DNA of 64,000 nucleotides from Felis catus (taxonomy: Eukaryota). The stretch spans positions 30,380,001 to 30,444,000 of the forward strand of contig NC_058372.1 of assembly GCF_018350175.1 (NCBI RefSeq). The letters are read 5' to 3'. The notes beneath the pieces were generated by a model. That model worked only from the letters and a program-made list of their open reading frames with translations, made no database searches and had not been told where the DNA came from. This document shows positions 9,301-61,400 of the stretch, piece after piece; the stretch's first letter is position 1, and each line of letters starts with the position of its first letter. Both the position numbers and the translations under genes were made by a program.

Positions 9301-10635
9301 ACTGCAAGTAACAAAGGACATAAAGGAAACTGGCATCCTCTCCTACTGTTATATATTTTCTCGTGCCCTATTCTACTCCATATACTTCACCTCTTCCTTT
9401 AGGTTGTTGTCGGGCAGGTCTTCTCTCCGGGCACCCCTCCGTAGGCTCACCGCTCGGTGGAAAAAGGGTGGCGGGGACTGAGAGTTCCCACGGGGTCCTT
9501 GGCCTGGTAGTCAAGGTGACCCGGGTGCGTCAGCGTTGGAGCTAGAGAACGTGGGACCTCAGTTGAGGGGAGGAATGAGTCTGAGCCGCGCGTAGGGGGT
9601 CCTACCCTTTCCCCCTTGCCCAAAATGTTGGCCAATGTAGTTGATGCCCCAAGGGCCCTGAGGCTATGGGACAGGAAATTCGAGTCTGGAAGGTGTTCTA
9701 AATCCACCGAGTGGATTCTGCCTCAGGTTTTAAAGAAGTGGTGGGGCTTGAGGGTTAGGCAACATTATATAAATATTGTTAATTCGACCAGAATGCCTTT
9801 AGCCCCGCCTCCAGCAGCCCCATTGTTGAGCTTGAATTTTTTCCTTAATGAAGCATTTGATAACCCAGTCTTTGATATGCTACCAAAGTCAGATGTGATG
9901 TCAACAAAAATGACAGCAAACATTCGGCTCTTTACCTGTTACCAGTTAGCCACTTAACAGTAACGAATAGGTACCATTATTGCCATTCTACAACAAACAA
10001 AGCAACAGATCCAAAATAAAGCTAGCTGTTTAAACGTCGTTTAGTCTCTATTGTATCCTGCCTCCCTGCTTGAAGAGTCCGGTTAACAATTACCCTATGG
10101 ATTACCTCATTGGTTCAAGTCTTTGGTGAAGTAGGCATTGTTCTGCGGCCAAGAGAAGGAACAGTGATTCAAGGATGATGTTTCCGACTTTAAGTATCAA
10201 TTGATTCAACAGTATTTATCAGCTGCCTACCCTGTGCCAACCGCTAACCTAGGATCCGGGGACTCGGTGAACAGCCCTGTCATCAGAGTTCACATTCCAG
10301 GGAAGACAACATATAAACAAATGTCAAGTAGTAATAAGTGCCATGAAGAAAAATAATGCAAAATAAGGAGCAAAGAGTGCTTGTTAATACACCCCAGCTT
10401 TTCTCTATAGTTGCCATTGTGGTTCTCGGATTCCCAACGAGGAACCACATATGTACCTCATTTAAGAGAAACAATAACATACTAGTTGCTTTTATTTTTT
10501 CCAACAAGCTTCAAAGGACAGCGCTTTGGGGTATTTGGGGAATATGTAAATAAGGAACAAGAGAGTGAATGAAAGTGAGAAATGATGAAGCAAAAAGGAA
10601 GCTGCTTCCACACACCAACTGATTTGCCCAAAGGT

Positions 10636-37851: not shown

Positions 37852-38435
37852 AGGCATGTCCCTGCTATTTACCGCCCCCTCCCCAGCCCTTTCAGAGACC
37901 CCTATTCACATCCCCAGCCTTCTCTCAAGCTCCCTTCTCTCAAGCTTCTTTTTCTCCCAGGGACCCAAACACATGTCTCAGGACCCAACACAACTTTCCC
38001 CCCTAAACCATCCCCCCCCCCCCGTCAGGTTTCTCCCCACCAAGGACTCTGCTTTCTGAAGTCCTTCCCCTTTCTAGCTCTACACCTACCTAAGTCCTGT
38101 CTGGAAATCAGAGGGAAACAGGCCATGGACATGATCCTCAAGAAAAAAACAAAAATGGAGGGAATTGGGGGCAGTGGGAAACTGGGGTCCAGCCTCCAGG
38201 GTCCTACATATGCACCAAGCCTCCCTCAGAATCCGAGTGGGGCGGATAGGAAGTATCCTTGATGCCTGGGTGTCCCCAACNNNNNNNNNNNNNNNNNNNN
38301 NNNNNNNNNNNNNNNNNNNNNNNNNNNNNNNNNNNNNNNNNNNNNNNNNNNNNNNNNNNNNNNNNNNNNNNNNNNNNNNNNNNNNNNNNNNNNNNNNNNN
38401 NNNNNNNNNNNNCCGCCCTCCTCTTGCCCTGTGGG

Positions 38436-38443
38436 TATATAAA
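38436..38443 (+). promoter_or_regulatory. TNF TATA box
   Basis: TATATAAA, downstream of a GC box at 38413; the more proximal promoter elements lie in the N run 38281-38412. Confidence 0.85.
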
Positions 38444-38661
38444 TGCAGCTGTCTGCACACCCAGTCAGCAGAAGCTTCCTCAGCGAAGACACCAGGGGAC
38501 CAGCCAGGAGAGAGAGAGAAGCAACTCCAGACCCCCCCGGAAATAACATCTCAGACGACACACCCCCAGACAAGCAGCCAGGCGATTCTCTCCCTCTCAC
38601 ACACGCTGCCTTAGGGCTCTACCATCACCCAGCTGGACTTGAGCCCCCTGGGAAGAACGCC

Positions 38662-40419
38662 ATGAGCACTGAAAGCATGATCCAGGACGTGGAGCTGGCC
38701 GAGGAGGCACTCCCCAAGAAGGCAGGGGGCCCCCAGGGCTCCAGAAGGTGCTTGTGCCTCAGCCTCTTCTCCTTCCTCCTCGTCGCAGGAGCCACCACAC
38801 TCTTCTGCCTGCTGCACTTTGGAGTGATCGGCCCCCAGAGGGAAGAGGTGAGTGCCACACCAGACTTGGCTCATTCTCCTACCCAGAGAGAAATGGGAGA
38901 GCAGGAGGGCAAGAAATGGGGTGGAGGAAGGAGGTGTGCTGATGGGGATGGGTGAGAGAAAACGTGGAGAAAGACGGGAGGCAGAAAGAGATGTGGAGAG
39001 CGATGAAGAGAGAAGGGACGGAGCACACCAAAGGTGCTCTCTAAGCACTTCTTGAATGAATGAATGAGCACACACATAGACAGACAGAGAGAGAGAGAGA
39101 GATGTGTGGAGAGATGTGGGGTGTGGGTTGAGAGATGGGAATAAAGATGCGAGACACAATGATGTGGGCGATATGAGAGAGATAAGGAAAGAGGTGAAGA
39201 AAGAGATAAGGAAAGACAGACAGATGTCTGTCACGTGGAAGACAGTGAAAGTGCTGTTGAATGAATGAATGGATGAATCAATCGATGAACGGAGAGAGAG
39301 AACCAGAGTATGAGCTGCATAAACAACCTAGCTGTTTCTCGGTTAGGGGTAACTTGTTCTGATGCTAAACCTCCTCCTTCTCCCCAACAGCTCCCACATG
39401 GCCTGCAACTAATCAACCCTCTGCCCCAGACACTCAGTAAGTGTCTCCAAAGCTTCTCTCCTGGTTCTGGGCTTGGGCGAGGGTGGAGGTTAGTCCTGGG
39501 ATAGCAGCAGAGGGGGAAATTCAGAGTTTGGGTTTGAGGGGAGGAGGAATGGAAGTCAAAGTGGGATATTTTCCAGGAAGCGTAAGGGTCTCACCTTTTT
39601 CTTTCCTCTTTCCTCCTCAGGATCATCTTCTCGAACTCCGAGTGACAAGCCAGTAGCCCATGTAGTAGGTAAGACTTCTGAGGCTGTAGCTGGAGGATGG
39701 CGAAGCAGGTGGGACATAGAGGGCTAGGATTTGGGGGCTGAGCCCAGGCTGAAGGCTGAGCCCAGGCCTTGGAGATGATATGAGAAGGACTCACTGAGCT
39801 CAAGGAGAGAGTGAAGGAAGAGCACAGGCCTTGAGGGGGACACTCAGAACCTCATGGCCACACGAGACGTGGGAGGACAGACAGAGGGGACAGGAACCGG
39901 ATGTGGGGGGGGGCAGAACTTGAGGGCCAGGATGTGGAGAGTGGAACTAACAGGGTCACACTGACTTACCCCTCCCTCCTTCTCTCCTTCCCTCCAGCAA
40001 ACCCCGAAGCTGAAGGGCAACTCCAGTGGCTGAGCCGGCGTGCCAATGCCCTCCTGGCCAATGGCGTGGAGCTGACAGACAACCAACTGAAGGTGCCCTC
40101 AGACGGGCTGTACCTCATCTACTCCCAGGTCCTCTTCACAGGCCAAGGANNNNNNNNNNNNNNNNNNNNNNNNNNNNNNNNNNNNNNNNNNNNNNNNNNN
40201 NNNNNNNNNNNNNNNNNNNNNNNNNNNNNNNNNNNNNNNNNNNNNNNNNNNNNNNNNNNNNNNNNNNNNNNNNNNNNNNNNNNNNNNNNNNNNNNNNNNN
40301 NNNNNNNNNNNNNCTTCCAACTGGAGAAGGGTGATCGACTCAGCGCTGAGATCAATCTGCCTGCCTATCTTGACTTTGCCGAGTCTGGGCAAGTCTACTT
40401 TGGAATCATTGCCCTGTGA
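38662..40419 (+). CDS. TNF: Tumor necrosis factor, 233 aa
   Basis: Exons 38662-38847 (186 nt), 39391-39436 (46), 39621-39668 (48), 39998-40419 (422, N run 40150-40313 inside) = 702 nt; [20 protein letters not shown]...[10 protein letters not shown]. Confidence 0.98.
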
Positions 40420-40609
40420 GGGGGCCGGACATCCATCCTTGCCCACCTCAACTCCTTTGTTATCTGCTCCTTCTGACCCCCTCATCCCCTTCTGGCTTAG
40501 AAAGAGAATTAGGGGCTCAGGGCTGGGCCCCAAGCTTAGAACTTTAAATAACAACACTTAGAAACCTAAGATCCGGGGACCTGGACTTTGGAGCATTGGC
40601 CACCAGCAA

Positions 40610-40722
40610 GAATTCAAACTGGGGCTTCCAGCATTCACTGGAGATCTCAGGTTTGGGTCCCTCAACGCAACCTGGGACACCTGGAATTCGGGGGTCAGGG
40701 AACCTTTCTGGCCAGACACTTC
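40610..40722 (+). promoter_or_regulatory. Homologue of the TNF 3'UTR PKR-activating element (2-APRE)
   Basis: Starts GAATTCAAACTGGGGCTTCCAG and ends CTTTCTGGCCAGA, matching both ends of the recalled human element, upstream of the ARE. Confidence 0.65.
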
Positions 40723-40852
40723 AGCACATCCCTTAAGAAGATCTCACCTACAACTTGACATGAGTGGACCTCAGGCCCCCCTTTCTTCAGATATTTCCAG
40801 ACTCTTCCCTGAGATGGAAAGCCCAGCCCCTCCCTCATGGGGCCAGCTCCCT

Positions 40853-40925
40853 CTATTTATATTTGCACTAGTGATTATTTATTATTTATTTATTATTTAT
40901 TTATTTACTGATGAATATATTTATT
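40853..40925 (+). promoter_or_regulatory. TNF class II AU-rich element
   Basis: Overlapping TTATTTATT array: GATTATTTATTATTTATTTATTATTTATTTATTTA. Confidence 0.95.
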
Positions 40926-40977
40926 TGGGAGGTTGGGGTGTCCTGGGAGACCAAATGAAGGGGCTGCCTTGACTCGG

Positions 40978-41000
40978 ACATGTTTTCTGTGAAAACGGAG
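40978..41000 (+). promoter_or_regulatory. Constitutive decay element (Roquin-binding triloop hairpin)
   Basis: ACATGTTTTC-TGT-GAAAACGGAG: stem 40981-40987 pairs with 40991-40997 around a UGU triloop; identical to the recalled mouse Tnf CDE core. Confidence 0.92.
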
Positions 41001-41190
41001 CTGAACTCTAGGCTCTTCCCTCCTGGCCTCCTGGCCTCTGTGCCTCCTTTTGCTTATATATTTTTAAAAATATTTATCTGATCGAGTTGTCTAATTAATG
41101 CTGATTTGGTGACTGACTGTCGCTACATCGCTGAACCTCTGCTCCCCAGGGGAGTTATGTCTGTAACCGCCCTACTGTTCAGTGGCGAGA

Positions 41191-41196
41191 AATAAA
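41191..41196 (+). terminator. TNF poly(A) signal
   Basis: AATAAA in the conserved context CAGTGGCGAGAAATAAAATGT. Confidence 0.85.
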
Positions 41197-41317
41197 ATGT
41201 ACCTAGAAAAGACACATGCATGGTCTCTTTGTTGGCATTAATTCTGCGGCTGCTTCTCCTTGGGGGTGGGGAGCCACTCCCTGAAGTCCCCTCTCTCTCT
41301 CTCTCTCTACATGGCTT

Positions 41318-41386
41318 AAGATCCCTGAACCCATAAAAATAAATGTGAATAAAAGTTAAAAAAAAAAAAAAAGATCCCTGAACCCA
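41318..41386 (+). mobile_element. Extremely 5'-truncated retro-insertion (37 bp) with a 16-bp TSD
   Basis: AAGATCCCTGAACCCA at 41318-41333 and 41371-41386 flanks an A-rich insert ending in poly(A); TT/AAGA nick site. Confidence 0.85.
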
Positions 41387-41504
41387 GTCCCCACTCCTTA
41401 GACTACTGGGACTCAGGAGACCCTACATAGAACAAAGCCAAGCCACAAATGCCCCTCCTCCAGGAAACTGGAGCCTGAACCTAATTACCTCTCCCTCAGG
41501 GCAT

Positions 41505-48403: not shown

Positions 48404-49828
48404 ATGGCAGCTTATAAGGAATGGAAAGAGGGTAAGGTAGCCCTCTGCACAGGGGAGGGTTGTGGGTAAACAGCAGTGTGTGCGTTCATGAGTAGGTGGT
48501 CAGAGGACACTCGGTCCAGGTGGGCAGGGGACCTCATGGGGAGGCCCAGAGACGGCACAGATGGCAGTGGGAAGCCTCTGAGGGGCCGGTGGTCATGGGT
48601 GTGGGTGAGGTAACAGGTGAGAGGTGGGCACCTCTGGTAGGAGGTGAGATAAACCAGATCCGGATGAAGAATCTGAGTCTGCTTTTCTGCCTCTAACGCT
48701 GTTGGATAGGGAAGCTGAGATACCCTCGGCCAACCAGGAGGATGGGGGAAGCTGAAGGGAGAAATGGGTCCCTGATACCTACCCCTTCTCGCCGCAGGTA
48801 TATGCCTTTACTTATTTGGCAGCAGCCTGGGGCTGGGGGGGCTCCTGCTCCTGGCTGTGGTCGTTCTGTCTGCCTGTCTGTGTCGGCTCCATCGGAAAGG
48901 TGAGCCCCAGCCTCACCTCCCTCATTCGCCCACCACAATGCCCCGTGTTGCCCCCACGCACCCCCTCTCCCGCTGCTTTCCCAGAAGGCCCCGTCAATTC
49001 CCACACACCCTGGGAGAGGAGGGTGGGAGAGAGGGGAGGACGGTGTCCAAAGAGAGAGGCAGGCGGGCGTTTGGTTTGGGCCATGGGAACCACAGAGATG
49101 TCAGCAAGTGAGGCAACACCGCTGGGGTTGGGAGAGTGATGGGGGAAGGGGGGGGGGGGCCTGCTGAGTTTCTTCTTTTCTTCCAGTGAGGAGGCTGGAG
49201 AGGAGCTGGGTGAGTCTGGGGGCAGGGGAGTGGGTGATGGGGACGAGCAGGCTGAGGGCTGAGAAGGGAGAGCAAGAGAAGAGAGGGAACACAGGGGCAC
49301 GAGAGAGCCAGAGATGCAGAGAAAAAAAGGGGGAGAAAAAGAGAAATAAGGATGAGAAGAAAAGCAGAGAGAAAGGGTATAGAGAAAGGAAAAGGTAATA
49401 AGAAAGGAGAAAGAGTGTGGAGAGCAGTGAGAGAGACAGAGAGTGAGAGAGAAAATCAGATGGAGAAGGAGAGAGATGCAGGGGGAGGGAAAAAGAGAGA
49501 GAATAATGACAACAGAGACGCAGGGAGGAAGGCAATGAGAGAAATGAGCAGGAGTTTAGGCTGGCAGAGACAGAGGGCAGCGAGCACTGAGGAGGCAATG
49601 AGGTACAGCGGGGTGGGCAGCAGCACAAGGAAGGACCCAGGGGAGGGGGCTCCTCCGGTGACCTCCCAGCAGCACCTTCTACCCTCGCACCAGGCCCAGC
49701 TCTCAGAGCAAGAGCTCCACTACGCATCTCTGCTGTCCGTGCCTTGCCGTGAGGGGCCTGGCCTCAGCCAAAGGGAAGGCTCCAAGGAGGACCCCAGCAG
49801 TGACTATGCCTGCATTGCCAAGAACTAA
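48404..49828 (+). CDS. LST1: Leukocyte-specific transcript 1, 95-aa transmembrane adaptor with two ITIMs
   Basis: Exons 48404-48431 (28 nt), 48798-48899 (102), 49187-49209 (23), 49694-49828 (135) = 288 nt; [95 protein letters not shown]. Confidence 0.9.
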
Positions 49829-56620: not shown

Positions 56621-56929
56621 TTGTATGAACATTCTCACATGTCTTGCAAATGATCTTTCAATACACTAATTTCACAGTTGCTCTACCTTGTCTACTCCAA
56701 CCACCACCTTGATTCTACATGGCCTACACCGTAAGTCATGTTACCACGGTTGGAATCTTACCTCCCCTTTCCCAGGGACATAAATCGATCAGGCCTGAGT
56801 CCCTCCAGACTCCTGTAACCTATGCATGTGCTTTCACACACAATTCAGCTGTTGGAGACTTCTGAGTTTTTTCTCTTTCACTTTCATTCAACAAATTTTG
56901 AATTTACCATCTACCATGGGGCTCACCTA

Positions 56930-57830
56930 GGCAATCTTGTTGTACGTAGCCAGTTTTTACTACTTCTTATTCCCTGTCAAGTCTCCAGTCTGTATCTCCA
57001 TCTCCGTCTACACCTTCACCTCAGGCCTCTTTTTTTTTTTTTTTACATTGTTTAAAATTTATTTTTGATAGAGACAGAGCACAAGTGGGGAAGGGCAGAG
57101 AGAGACAGATACACAGAATCCAAGGCAGGTTCCAGGCTCTGAGCTGTCAGCACAGAGCCTGATGCGGGGCTCTAACTCACAAACCGTGAGATCATGACCT
57201 GAGCCAAAGTTGGACGCCTAACCGACTGAGCCACCCAGGTGCCCCTTAGGCCTCTTTCTTGACACCTGAGTCCAGAATATCTACCTGCCCTCTAGATATC
57301 TCCTCCAGAGTGTTTCACAGGCATTTCAAAATCATCCGTGTCCACCCAAACTGGGTCAGCTTCCTATATTCCCCATCTCGGTGAATGGAAACACAGTCCA
57401 CCCCATCACTTAAGGTAAAAACGTGGAATTTATATGGGCGCCTGGGTGGCTCAGTCAGTTGAACGTCCAACTTCGGCCCAGGTCATGATCTCACAGTTTG
57501 TGGGTTCAAGCCCCACGTCGGGCTGCATGCTGACAGCTCAGAGTCTGGAGCCTGCTTGGGATTCTGTCTCTCTCTCTCTCTCTCTCTCTGCCCCTCCCTG
57601 GCTTGTGCTGTCTCTCAAAAATTAGTAATTAAACATAAAAAAAAAAAAACCTGGGATTTGTGTTTTTCTACTTTCTCCCTCAGTTCCCCGATCCTATCCA
57701 TCTCCAAATCCTGTCCATTCTGCCTCTGAAATATCTTGGGTATTTTCCCACCTCTTAATTCTCACTGCTAGTCAAGGCCCTCGTTACCTCAGTACGAAAC
57801 TAGTACAATTGCTTCTCTAATGGACAGTGT
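56930..57830 (+). mobile_element. L2 fragment with CanSINEs (about 57040-57246 - and 57436-57650 +)
   Basis: CCATCTCCAAATCCTGTCCATTCTGCCTCTGAAATATCT L2 signature. Confidence 0.7.
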
Positions 57831-57888
57831 GGTTTCTTCTCAATATCCATTCCACACCTCCCTCTCCAAGCGTGGAGGCTCAACCATC

Positions 57889-58363
57889 CATTCAACAATG
57901 CTTTTACTGTGTTCCGTCCACATGCCAGACATTCTGTCTTCATCTTCCCTATGTCTTTCTTCACCTCTCCCCTTCTCTTGTATCTCCCACATCTGTGTCC
58001 ACAACTCCTTCTTCTCACTATCTTTATTCGTATAACTTGTTTCTTCCCTATGTCTCTATCCACACCCTATATCTCTCTACACATCTTTACCCAGCCCCCC
58101 TCACCCCTACACACATACATTTGCTTATTCACTAATTCATTCATTCAGCAAATATTTGGTGAGTGCCTACCATGTGCCAGGTACCTATCTCTCCAGTCCT
58201 GTCTCTCTCTTCCCCCATTTCTCTCTATATTCTTTCTGTTTCCCCATCTTCCAGCACATCTCTTTCCCCCACCCATCTCACTCTCCTCCTCCCCATTTCT
58301 CTCTGGGTGGGGGAATGAGCCAAGGCTGGCAACGCACTCACCTTTTTTCCTCTGGGGACCCAT
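57889..58363 (-). pseudogene. Inverted, diverged fragment homologous to the TNF exon 1 3' end and intron 1
   Basis: 43/50 ungapped identity between 58341-58292 and TNF 38848-38897, plus four further collinear exact anchors; GPQRKK|GTGAGT versus TNF GPQREE|GTGAGT. Confidence 0.8.
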
Positions 58364-58459
58364 TGCTACCTCTACCAAAAAGCATTCCCTGACTCCACCA
58401 GACTGGCTGGGACCACTCCCAGATGCCCTCAGATTCTCAGTACAAGGTTCTTTAAAAAA

Positions 58460-61400
58460 AATAAATAAATAACCTACAATATTAAAGGAAAACTTTAACT
58501 CACGTCCATCAGAAACTGACAAATCAAACAGGCAAATAATTACTAACAACACAGAAGAGTGAAACTGGATAGTTAACAAGCTTGATCTAGAAGAAATATG
58601 TAGGATCCTAGAAAAACTAGAAAATATGTATTTTTTTTTCAGGTACAACATAGACACTTAGAAAAAAAAGAATCAAAATCATATAAACCACAATTGCTGC
58701 CCAAAAGCCATGACAATTTAAGAACAATAACAAAGAATATTTATTATATGCTTAGAAATTTTTTTAATGTTTTTTAATGTACTTTTAAACTTTAGAAATC
58801 TACCTGTAATGAAAATGTTAAACAAGATATTATAATAGAATTTAAAATATTTGAACTGGGGGCACCTGGGTGGCTGAGTCAGTTAAGTGTCTGATTCTTG
58901 ATCTTGACATGATCTCAAGGTTCCTGGTTTTGAGCCCCACATCCTGCTTTATGTTGACAGCATGGAGCTTCCTTGGGATTCTGTCTCTCCCTTTCTCTGC
59001 CCCTCCCCCACTTGTTTTCTCCCTCTCTCTCTGTCTCTCTCTCTCAAAATAAATAAACTTTTAAAAAATTAAAATAAAATATTTTGAACTGAATGACAGT
59101 GAAAACACTGCCTATCTAAACTATGGAATGTAGCTAGAACAATTCATGAAAAAAATAAATGTGTATATTAGGAAGGAAAATTCGAAAGTCATTGAATTGG
59201 ACAGGTATTTCAAGAAATTAGAAAAAGAGCACAGAACAATCCTAAAAAATTAAGAAAGAAAATAATAAAGATACTTTTAGAAATTAATGAAATAGGGGAG
59301 CCTGGGTGGCTCAGTTGCTTAAGCAACTGATTTTGACTCAGGTAGTGATCTCACACTCGTGAGATAGAAATTGAGCCCACAGTTGCTTAGGATTCTCTCT
59401 TTCCCTCTACCCCGGCCCCCACTCACAGTCTCTCTCAAATAAAAAAAAAATTTAATATGAAATTTATTGTCAAATTGGTCTCCATACAACACCCAGTGTT
59501 CATCCCGAAAGGTGCCTTCCTCAATACCCATCACCCACTTTCCCCTCCTCCACTACCCCCCATCAACCCTCAGTTTATTCTCAGTATTTAAGAGTCTCTT
59601 ATGGTTTGCCTTCAAATAAAAATTTTTAAAAATTAATGAAAAATAGGGGCGCCTGGGTGGCTCAGTCGGTTAAGCGTCCGACTTCGGCTCAGGTCATGAT
59701 CCCGCGGTCGGTGAGTTCGAACCCCGCGTCGGGCTCTGGGCTGATGGCTCAGAGCCTGGAGCCTGCTTCCGATTCTGTGTCTCCCTCTCTCTCTGACCCT
59801 CCCCCGCTCATGCTCTGTCTCTCTCTGTCTCAAAAATAAATAAACGTTAAAAAATTAAAAAAAAATTAATGAAATATAGAAGAAAATAGAGGGGTGCCTG
59901 GGTTGCTCAGTGGATTGAGCATCCAACTCCTGCTGGGGTCATGATCTCATGGTTCATGGGTTCGAGCCCTCGTCGGGCTCTGTGCTAACAGCACAGAGCC
60001 TGCTCCGAATTCTTGGTTTCCCTCTCTCTCTGCCCCTCTGCCACCCCTCTCAAAAATAAAACGAACATTTAAAAAAAGAAAAGAAAAGAAAAAATAGAGC
60101 AGAAAAAATATATATATTTACAAAGGCTACGAATATTAAAAAATCTCTGACCAGGGTTGCCTTCGTGGCTCAGTCACTTAAGCGCGACTCTTGATTTCGG
60201 GTCAGGTCATGATATCACAGTTTGTGGGTTTGAGCCCAAGCCCTGCATCAGGCCCCAAGATGACAAGACCAAGCCTGCTTGGGATTCTCTTTCCCTCTCT
60301 CTCTGCCCTTTCCACATTTGCGCTCTCTCTCTCTCTTTCAAAATAAATAAATAATAAATAAAAACTTTATTAAAAAAAAAATTTAGCCACCAGTGGGGTG
60401 CCTGGCTGGCTCAGTCAGAAGAGCATGTGATTCTTAATCTTGGGGTCATGAGTTCGAGCCCCATGTTGAATGTAGAGATTACTTAAATAAACTTAGAAAA
60501 AAAATTTAGCCATCAAAAAAAAATCACCAAACCCAGATAGTTATGAAACTTCCAAACCAGAGATCATTCCAGTCATATAAAAATTATTCTAGCTGTCAGG
60601 AAACAGGAAAAGTTTCTCAACTTAATTCATGAGATTAATGTAATCTTCATACAAAAGCCAGGCAAGGGCAAATTGAGAAAGTAAAATTATAAAACAATTT
60701 CACTCATGAATATAGATGCAAGAAAAAAAAGAACTTAATAAAAATATTTAAAAACCTAAACCAAAATTGAATAAATAATACAAAACAACCTAACCAGTGT
60801 TTATCCTAGGAAAGTAATTCACTATTCATGCAATTTCTAATTCTGTTCATGCAATTCATTGCATTAAGAGATTAAGGAGGAAAATCCATCTGACCATCGC
60901 AGTCAATACAATAAAAGCGGTTGACAGATTTTGTTCATGATAACTACTCAAATTCTATAAGCAGGAAAAAACCCATTTCACAAGTCATTTATGATTTTTA
61001 AAATTATGGGCACCTGGGTGCTCAGTTGGTTAAGCGACCGACTTTGACTCAGGTCATGATCTCATAACCCGTGGGTTCGAGTCCTGTGTCGGGCTCTGTG
61101 CTGACAGCTCAGAGTCTGGAGCCTGCTTTGGATTCTGTGTCTCCCTCTCTCTGACCCTCCCCTGTTCATGCTCTGTCTCTCTGTCTCAAAAATAAGTAAA
61201 CATTAAAAAAATTAAAAAAAAAAAAACAATTATGAATGTATGTCTTTATTCTCCCATGAAATTTAGTGTTCACTTTCGTTTTTATTTTTTTTAACATTGA
61301 TTTTTGAGAGACAGAGTGAGAGAGAGCACCAGTGGGGGAGGGGTAGAGAGAGGGGGAGACACAGAATCTGAAGCAGGCTCCATCAGAGCCCAACAACAGG

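Follow-up and report, generated by a model that had tools for sequence, protein, structure and literature searches.

The class III region of the cat holds, 19.5 kb from TNF and inverted relative to it, a short stretch that resembles the end of TNF exon 1 together with the beginning of intron 1. This raises the question of whether a further gene of the TNF family once stood here and was lost, or whether only a piece of TNF was ever copied to this place. We favor the second answer and put it at a probability of roughly 85%: the stretch, called the relic in the following, is an old, short and partial copy of TNF that was made at the DNA level, inserted nearby in inverted orientation, and has been non-functional and neutral since. 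The window, that is, the whole stretch of 64,000 nt of cat DNA analyzed here, shows the gene order LTA, TNF, LTB, LST1 and NCR3 according to its open reading frames and a scan with the domain model PF00229. Its translated SINEs resemble carnivore Can-SINEs, and some of the sequencing runs that contain the relic stretch carry the label 'feline metagenome', both of which fit a genome of the cat family. The relic lies between NCR3 and AIF1, the interval to which the sequence-only reading of the window had assigned it, at 6–8 kb upstream of NCR3 and in the orientation of that gene. The window contains five runs of N, which were kept as such; two of them touch TNF, namely at 38281–38412 in the promoter region and at 40150–40313 in exon 4. 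All features are compiled in Table 1.

Table 1. Positions of the TNF relic, its parts and flanks, the parent stretch, neighboring genes and counterparts in other mammals. Positions refer to the window unless preceded by a locus label (L016 to L022, genomic loci retrieved around NCR3).
Feature	Position	Strand	Remarks
Copy of last ~21 nt of TNF exon 1	58342–58363	-	parent 38827–38847; 17/21 aligned bases match, one extra base
Possible earlier start of exon 1 homology, ~5 nt	near 58368 / 38822	-	homology may begin here
Relic of TNF intron 1 GT donor	58340–58341	-	AAG/GTGAGT in cat; read from sequence
Copy of first ~420 nt of TNF intron 1	57885–58341	-	parent 38848–39267; blastn, MAFFT, own-genome search
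Repeat tail 1	58127–58184	-	from TNF intron 1, parent about 39020–39075; dispersed copies
Repeat tail 2, end of second internal unit	57885–57941	-	parent 39215–39267
Ancestral intron segment GGGAAGAAACAAGT...AATAAAGAT	58020–58048	-	single occurrence in window; partly lost from cat TNF intron
Possible ~25-nt homology extension, uncertain 3' breakpoint	57862–57884	-	parent 39268 to about 39296
Non-TNF 5' flank	58364–58460	-	same place in dog, pangolin, sheep, lemur; single copy in genome
Non-TNF 3' flank	57650–57884	-	kept in dog, equid, pangolin, sheep, bat, lemur; single copy in genome
Parent stretch in TNF	38822–39296	+	end of exon 1 (CDS 38662–38847) and most of intron 1 (38848–39390)
Dog relic	L016 8082–8968	NCR3 strand	76% to cat relic with flanks; SINE (Can-SINE) inserted inside
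Equid remnant	L017 4987–5126	NCR3 strand	second repeat tail and 3' flank only
Pangolin relic	L018 4152–4787	NCR3 strand	72% to cat relic with flanks
Sheep relic	L019 2744–3267	NCR3 strand	68–75% to cat relic with flanks; internal deletion
Bat relic	L020 3458–4107	NCR3 strand	73% to cat relic with flanks
Lemur relic	L021 1790–2622	NCR3 strand	65–83% to cat relic with flanks
LTA exon 4	about 35.9–36.3 kb	+	ORFs/PF00229 scan
TNF CDS	starts 38662	+	ORFs/PF00229 scan
LTB	43.4–44.6 kb	-	ORFs/PF00229 scan
LST1 C-terminus	49.4–49.8 kb	+	ORFs
NCR3 Ig exon	50.8–51.2 kb	-	ORFs
LST1-area GA-rich matches	window about 49100–49730; L017 13072–13210; L020 14408–14568; L022 13189–13536		

The minus strand from 58363 to 57885 was collinear with TNF 38827–39267 at 66% identity over 494 columns (blastn and alignment), and a MAFFT alignment of the two sequences showed 68% identity over 425 aligned bases with a K2P distance of 0.43. 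Directly after the donor, 43 of 50 positions matched between 58341–58292 and TNF 38848–38897 without a gap, which corresponds to a binomial tail of 3e-19 at a composition match rate of 0.25. Exact collinear anchors were found farther downstream at 58147/39053, 58029/39139, 57968/39190 and 57897/39255. Upstream of the relic donor stands CCCCAGAGG, in which six A take the place of GAAGA in TNF, resulting in one extra base before the donor, and the translations read MGPQRKK (relic) and IGPQREE (TNF). The inverted match with its exon-donor junction had been described from the letters alone, and its 43/50 matching positions, the anchors, the translations, the extra base and a 29-mer at 58048 that is not present in the cat TNF intron were all reproduced here.

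Given that a 55-nt tail of the relic is a dispersed repeat and that the GA-rich intron weakly matches other GA-rich DNA, for instance near LST1, the resemblance could be ascribed to shared repeats and low complexity instead of descent. Several independent controls leave this explanation with a practically negligible probability. A 101-nt piece spanning the junction matched nothing but itself and TNF in the whole genome of 2.43 Gb (E 4.7e-13, 83% over 81 nt). The local Smith-Waterman score of relic against TNF was 114, compared with 17.8±2.8 (maximum 31) for dinucleotide shuffles and no more than 30 for 490 other 480-nt stretches of the window, so that it stands 34–45 standard deviations above the shuffles and amounts to almost four times the best genomic control. 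Moreover, the alignment is collinear over its full length, and cat TNF independently matched the relics of five other mammals at 63–72%. We therefore consider an origin from repeats or low complexity to be refuted by the uniqueness of the junction, the score controls and the orthologue matches; in this point, the initial assignment to TNF stood firm.

The relic was also the only low-copy paralogous patch revealed by a comparison of the window with itself. When TNF 38413–40149 was compared with the genome, only TNF itself and the relic were found, and 40314–41500 had no other copy except short matches to short stretches of the 3' UTR. The single-copy status of the relic thus holds, with only the 55-nt tail being dispersed. 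All sampled words of the relic stretch occurred in at least 14 DNA runs that five studies had produced for the species, demonstrating that it is real and not an artefact of the assembly; two other species labels contained 38–48% of these words.

The internal structure of the relic reveals its source. It holds both of the ~200-nt internal units of TNF intron 1, each of which closes with a repeat tail, and the like-for-like pairs of units from relic and TNF scored 48 and 55, in comparison to 21–33 for the cross pairs. The internal duplication of TNF intron 1 is therefore older than the relic. In TNF itself, positions 38884–39301 consist of a tandem duplication of a GA-rich unit of ~200 nt, the two units being about 60–66% alike. 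The first repeat tail (58184–58127) closes with TGAATGAATGAAT and has at least 38 other copies in the genome at 79–97% identity, eight of which were put into an alignment. We take this tail to be the 3' end of a MIR, and the second tail is presumably MIR as well. Only these two tails of ~50 nt match dispersed copies, and the remaining relic is not dispersed. A CpG site in the first tail was considered as a dating mark and dropped, as the wording of the cat relic at this site is a change of the cat lineage. Because the relic shares both the repeat tails and the internal duplication with TNF intron 1, it must derive from TNF itself and from the mammalian era, and does not represent an old paralogue of the family.

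To follow the relic through other mammals, NCR3 of many species was located by searching proteins with the Ig exon of the cat gene; this led to genomic loci with 10-kb flanks in which NCR3 begins on the plus strand at position 10001. In dog, pangolin, sheep, bat and lemur, the relic together with its flanks was found upstream of NCR3, again in the orientation of that gene. In these five orthologues, the homology to TNF starts at TNF 38821–38830 and ends at about 39271–39300, so that both breakpoints are sharp and common to six species including the cat. The exact 3' end is blurred by the stretch 57862–57884, where the bat orthologue aligns with cat TNF to about 39300 and the multi-species alignment is weak. 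The segment at 58020–58048 is kept in the relics of the same five species, which bears out the earlier suggestion that the relic preserves bases that have gone from the TNF intron of the cat. The great age proposed at the outset is likewise borne out, since the presence of the relic at the same place in Laurasiatheria and in the lemur means that the copy predates the split between Laurasiatheria and primates.

Each lineage has added its own damage to the fragment, such as the SINE in the dog, the internal deletion in the sheep and the loss of the 5' part in the equid. The latter lacks the 5' ~420 nt of the relic (L017:4200–4987), and the interval is occupied by AT-rich DNA and two sequences that we assume to be equid SINEs. 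In the dugong, the interval between well-conserved anchors measures only 462 nt (L022:6732–7194), as opposed to about 6 kb in the pangolin, and both the relic and at least 2.8 kb shared by pangolin and lemur are missing. This reflects either a deletion in the dugong lineage or an insert in the boreoeutherian stem. As the whole surrounding interval is collapsed there, the absence of the relic from the dugong is uninformative with regard to its age. None of the species examined (dog, equid, pangolin, sheep, bat, lemur and dugong) showed both anchors around an empty site.

The sequence-only reading had spoken of a paralogue and of the possible remnant of a lost TNF-family gene. In its strongest form, this would mean that a complete second TNF gene in inverted orientation once extended the LTA-TNF-LTB group to four members, and that all of it except the relic was deleted before the boreoeutherian ancestor. 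We consider this unlikely. In its favor, the relic is oriented like LTB and NCR3, deletions predating the common ancestor may have occurred, and the block of at least 2.8 kb missing in the dugong points to a history of large insertions and deletions in this neighborhood. However, six species share the same two sharp breakpoints, one inside exon 1 and one inside intron 1, and a fuller copy, for which the DNA upstream of NCR3 in other mammals had been the proposed place to look, was not encountered in dog, pangolin, sheep, bat or lemur. The flanks are unrelated to TNF: the 5' flank gave a z score of -0.1 against promoter and exon 1, the 3' flank gave 1.1 and -0.5, and the positive control reached 45. 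A sensitive blastn comparison of 34.5–45 kb with 51.5–74 kb, including 10 kb beyond the window, recovered no further piece of LTA, TNF or LTB apart from the relic and no collinear exons, promoter or 3' UTR beside it, in agreement with the initial failure to find exons 2–4; there is hence no other such piece within 22 kb, and none elsewhere in the genome. In a six-frame genome scan, PF00229 identified TNF, LTA and LTB on the contig and gave no match in the part of the window beyond NCR3. Finally, the short internal branch described below leaves little time for two deletions that both abut unrelated DNA. Together with the intron repeat tails and the duplication that the relic carries along, these findings speak against a lost family gene.

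The preferred reading is a partial copy of TNF. A retrocopy was rejected: intron sequence is contiguous with exon sequence and the relic has no poly(A) tail, with no A-run at its 3' end, which indicates that DNA, and not mRNA, was the template. A candidate target-site duplication at 57777–57795 and 58425–58443 matches at 14 of 19 positions and lies 60–110 nt from the ends of the relic; it was taken as chance, and by our own rough estimate a direct repeat of this quality is expected about 0.4 times by chance. We propose that a DNA-level copy of about 475–480 nt, reaching from ~25 nt before the end of exon 1 to ~450 nt into intron 1, would have been inserted in inverted orientation 6–8 kb upstream of NCR3 prior to the split of Laurasiatheria from primates. 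Judging from size, distance, orientation and breakpoints, nearby sequence may have served as the template for a short copy during replication template switching or break repair; a partial duplication with inversion would be the other route. The fragment would have drifted neutrally since then, with no junction signature surviving.

A different possibility is that the fragment was co-opted after its arrival, either supplying NCR3 or an unannotated transcript with an alternative first exon or donor, or acting on one of them as a regulatory element. The cat copy does have a consensus donor (AAG/GTGAGT) and an upstream ATG, it lies on the NCR3 strand 6–7 kb upstream of that gene, in the dog, the NCR3 gene model downstream of the relic starts at a distance of only about 1 kb, and some RNA-labelled runs contain 0.35–0.85 of the words of the stretch. 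Nevertheless, such a role is very unlikely. Cat, sheep and bat have retained the GT donor, but dog, pangolin and lemur, three of the six species, no longer have it. The ATG and the six-A run of the cat are absent from the other species and hence represent changes of the cat lineage, and bat and pangolin keep the TNF wording GGCCCCCAGAGGGAAGAG exactly; the MGPQRKK frame pointed out at the outset is thus an accident of this lineage. Most of the fragment has been deleted in the equid. The RNA runs in question are gut or feline metatranscriptomes and cover the flanks too, as carry-over of DNA would, and an Rfam scan of 56.5–59.5 kb yielded sub-threshold matches only, with no family above threshold.

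The rate of change points in the same direction. The relic evolves no slower than its flanks, and nothing points to constraint: averaged over all pairs of the six orthologues, K2P was 0.437 at the junction, 0.365 in the rest and 0.374 in the whole relic, and the flanks of the six species had values of 0.401 (5') and 0.301 (3'). Between the relic and TNF of the cat, the K2P started at 0.16 over the first 60 nt, rose to 0.55–0.63 in the middle and fell back to 0.29 over the last 77 nt, and the junction, being 84% similar, exceeded the rest of the alignment (Fisher p 6e-4). Constraint on the cat junction was suspected from this high identity and was rejected, as the comparison of six species showed none. 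Because the orthologues lack any conservation of the junction, we attribute its identity in the cat to slow change on the TNF side together with chance.

A maximum-likelihood tree arranged the relics almost as a star, close to whose center cat TNF attaches with a branch of 0.19–0.24; the path to the cat relic is 0.18. The K2P distance was 0.27 between the majority sequence of the six relics and cat TNF, and 0.19 between the cat relic and the majority of the other five. The short branch evident from the tree and from the majority distances suggests that little time passed between copying and radiation. About 0.04 substitutions per site would separate the two events, a value that is based on one TNF sequence, that of the cat, and that applies only if TNF intron 1 drifts at an approximately neutral rate. 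TNF exon 1 and intron 1 of other mammals were not found in metagenome scans. Copying may thus have taken place in the placental or boreoeutherian stem, roughly in the order of 100 million years ago, where the absolute date presumes general mammalian divergence times.

In view of the block missing in the dugong, the relic could have arrived inside a larger insert. Taken further, the fragment would be the footprint of a larger rearrangement in the placental stem: an inverted duplication in which a second TNF gene was present in full, or else a composite insert measuring at least 2–3 kb. This is conceivable but unlikely. If it were true, the composite insert would also have built the region upstream of NCR3, and the block that the dugong lacks would be the original insert and not a later deletion.

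Some observations on the loci are reported here in their own right. The dog NCR3 model (201 aa, isoform X1; L016:10001–18106) spans 8.1 kb, compared with 1.8–2.9 kb in other species, which suggests that a far-upstream first exon has been annotated; the cat counterpart of its start is located near 56.7 kb (about 56650–56880 of the window). A GA-rich stretch in or near LST1 was the best match to TNF intron 1 apart from the relic in several species, and these matches look like shared low complexity rather than homology. In the Hipposideros assembly (L023:11776–21409), TNF is about 9.6 kb away from the end of LTB, as compared to about 2–3 kb in the cat. This locus reaches only 368 nt into TNF, and the gap could be a large insert or a feature of the assembly. 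The stretch 58440–58860 next to the relic had one weak copy elsewhere in an own-genome word search.

Compared with its parent, the relic has the same collinear end of exon 1, the donor, both units and both tails, at 66–68% identity overall and 84% at the junction. In contrast to TNF, it is inverted, stands 19.5 kb away and lacks the promoter, the start of exon 1 and exons 2–4, while it keeps a segment of ~17 nt that was lost from the cat TNF intron and carries one extra base before the donor. Structural-variant studies have established short templated insertions and inverted local duplications, produced by template switching and break repair, as a general mechanism. Like the relic, such insertions are a few hundred bases long and inverted, have their source tens of kilobases away on the same chromosome, and show breakpoints at no natural boundary of a gene. 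The relic differs in that no microhomology or junction signature is readable after about 100 million years, and its mechanism is inferred. With processed pseudogenes it has in common that a dead copy of a gene sits at a second site; unlike them, it contains intron sequence, has no poly(A) and no significant target-site duplication, and stems from the 5' interior of the gene. Homology including the intron, single-copy status and lack of constraint characterize it as an unprocessed pseudogene fragment.

Unprocessed pseudogene fragments of BAT1, RPS28 and class I genes are contained in the annotation of the cat MHC (PMC2453318). They resemble the relic in being pieces of neighboring MHC genes that were copied at the DNA level, have no coding capacity and are carried neutrally. 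The relic, however, is much smaller, mostly intronic and far older, and its surroundings, the class III region, are otherwise stable. The annotation does not include the relic, and NCR3 and AIF1 are not entered either; the gene table runs from C6orf47 to LTB without APOM, BAT3, BAT2, AIF1, NCR3 or LST1 (PMC2453318). The exons of NCR3 and LST1 are plainly present in the window although they are missing from this table. The part of the literature that was searched, including a comparative paper on the class III region (PMC1654159) and a review of the HLA super-locus (PMC9772353), contained no account of a fragment or pseudogene of TNF in the NCR3-AIF1 interval. The relic therefore appears to be undescribed so far.

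Taken together, the relic is an ordinary kind of object, a gene-fragment pseudogene, in a well-known place. It is no pointer to a new cytokine gene, and nothing suggests an effect on TNF or NCR3. Its value is that of a small, datable fossil added to one of the most studied gene clusters of mammals. It shows that TNF intron 1 already had its repeat tails and its internal duplication before the placental radiation, and it reveals bases that have since been lost from the TNF intron of the cat. Furthermore, it provides a clean case of a short, inverted copy of a nearby gene that has survived for about 100 million years without a sign of function, and is useful as a neutral yardstick for the class III region.
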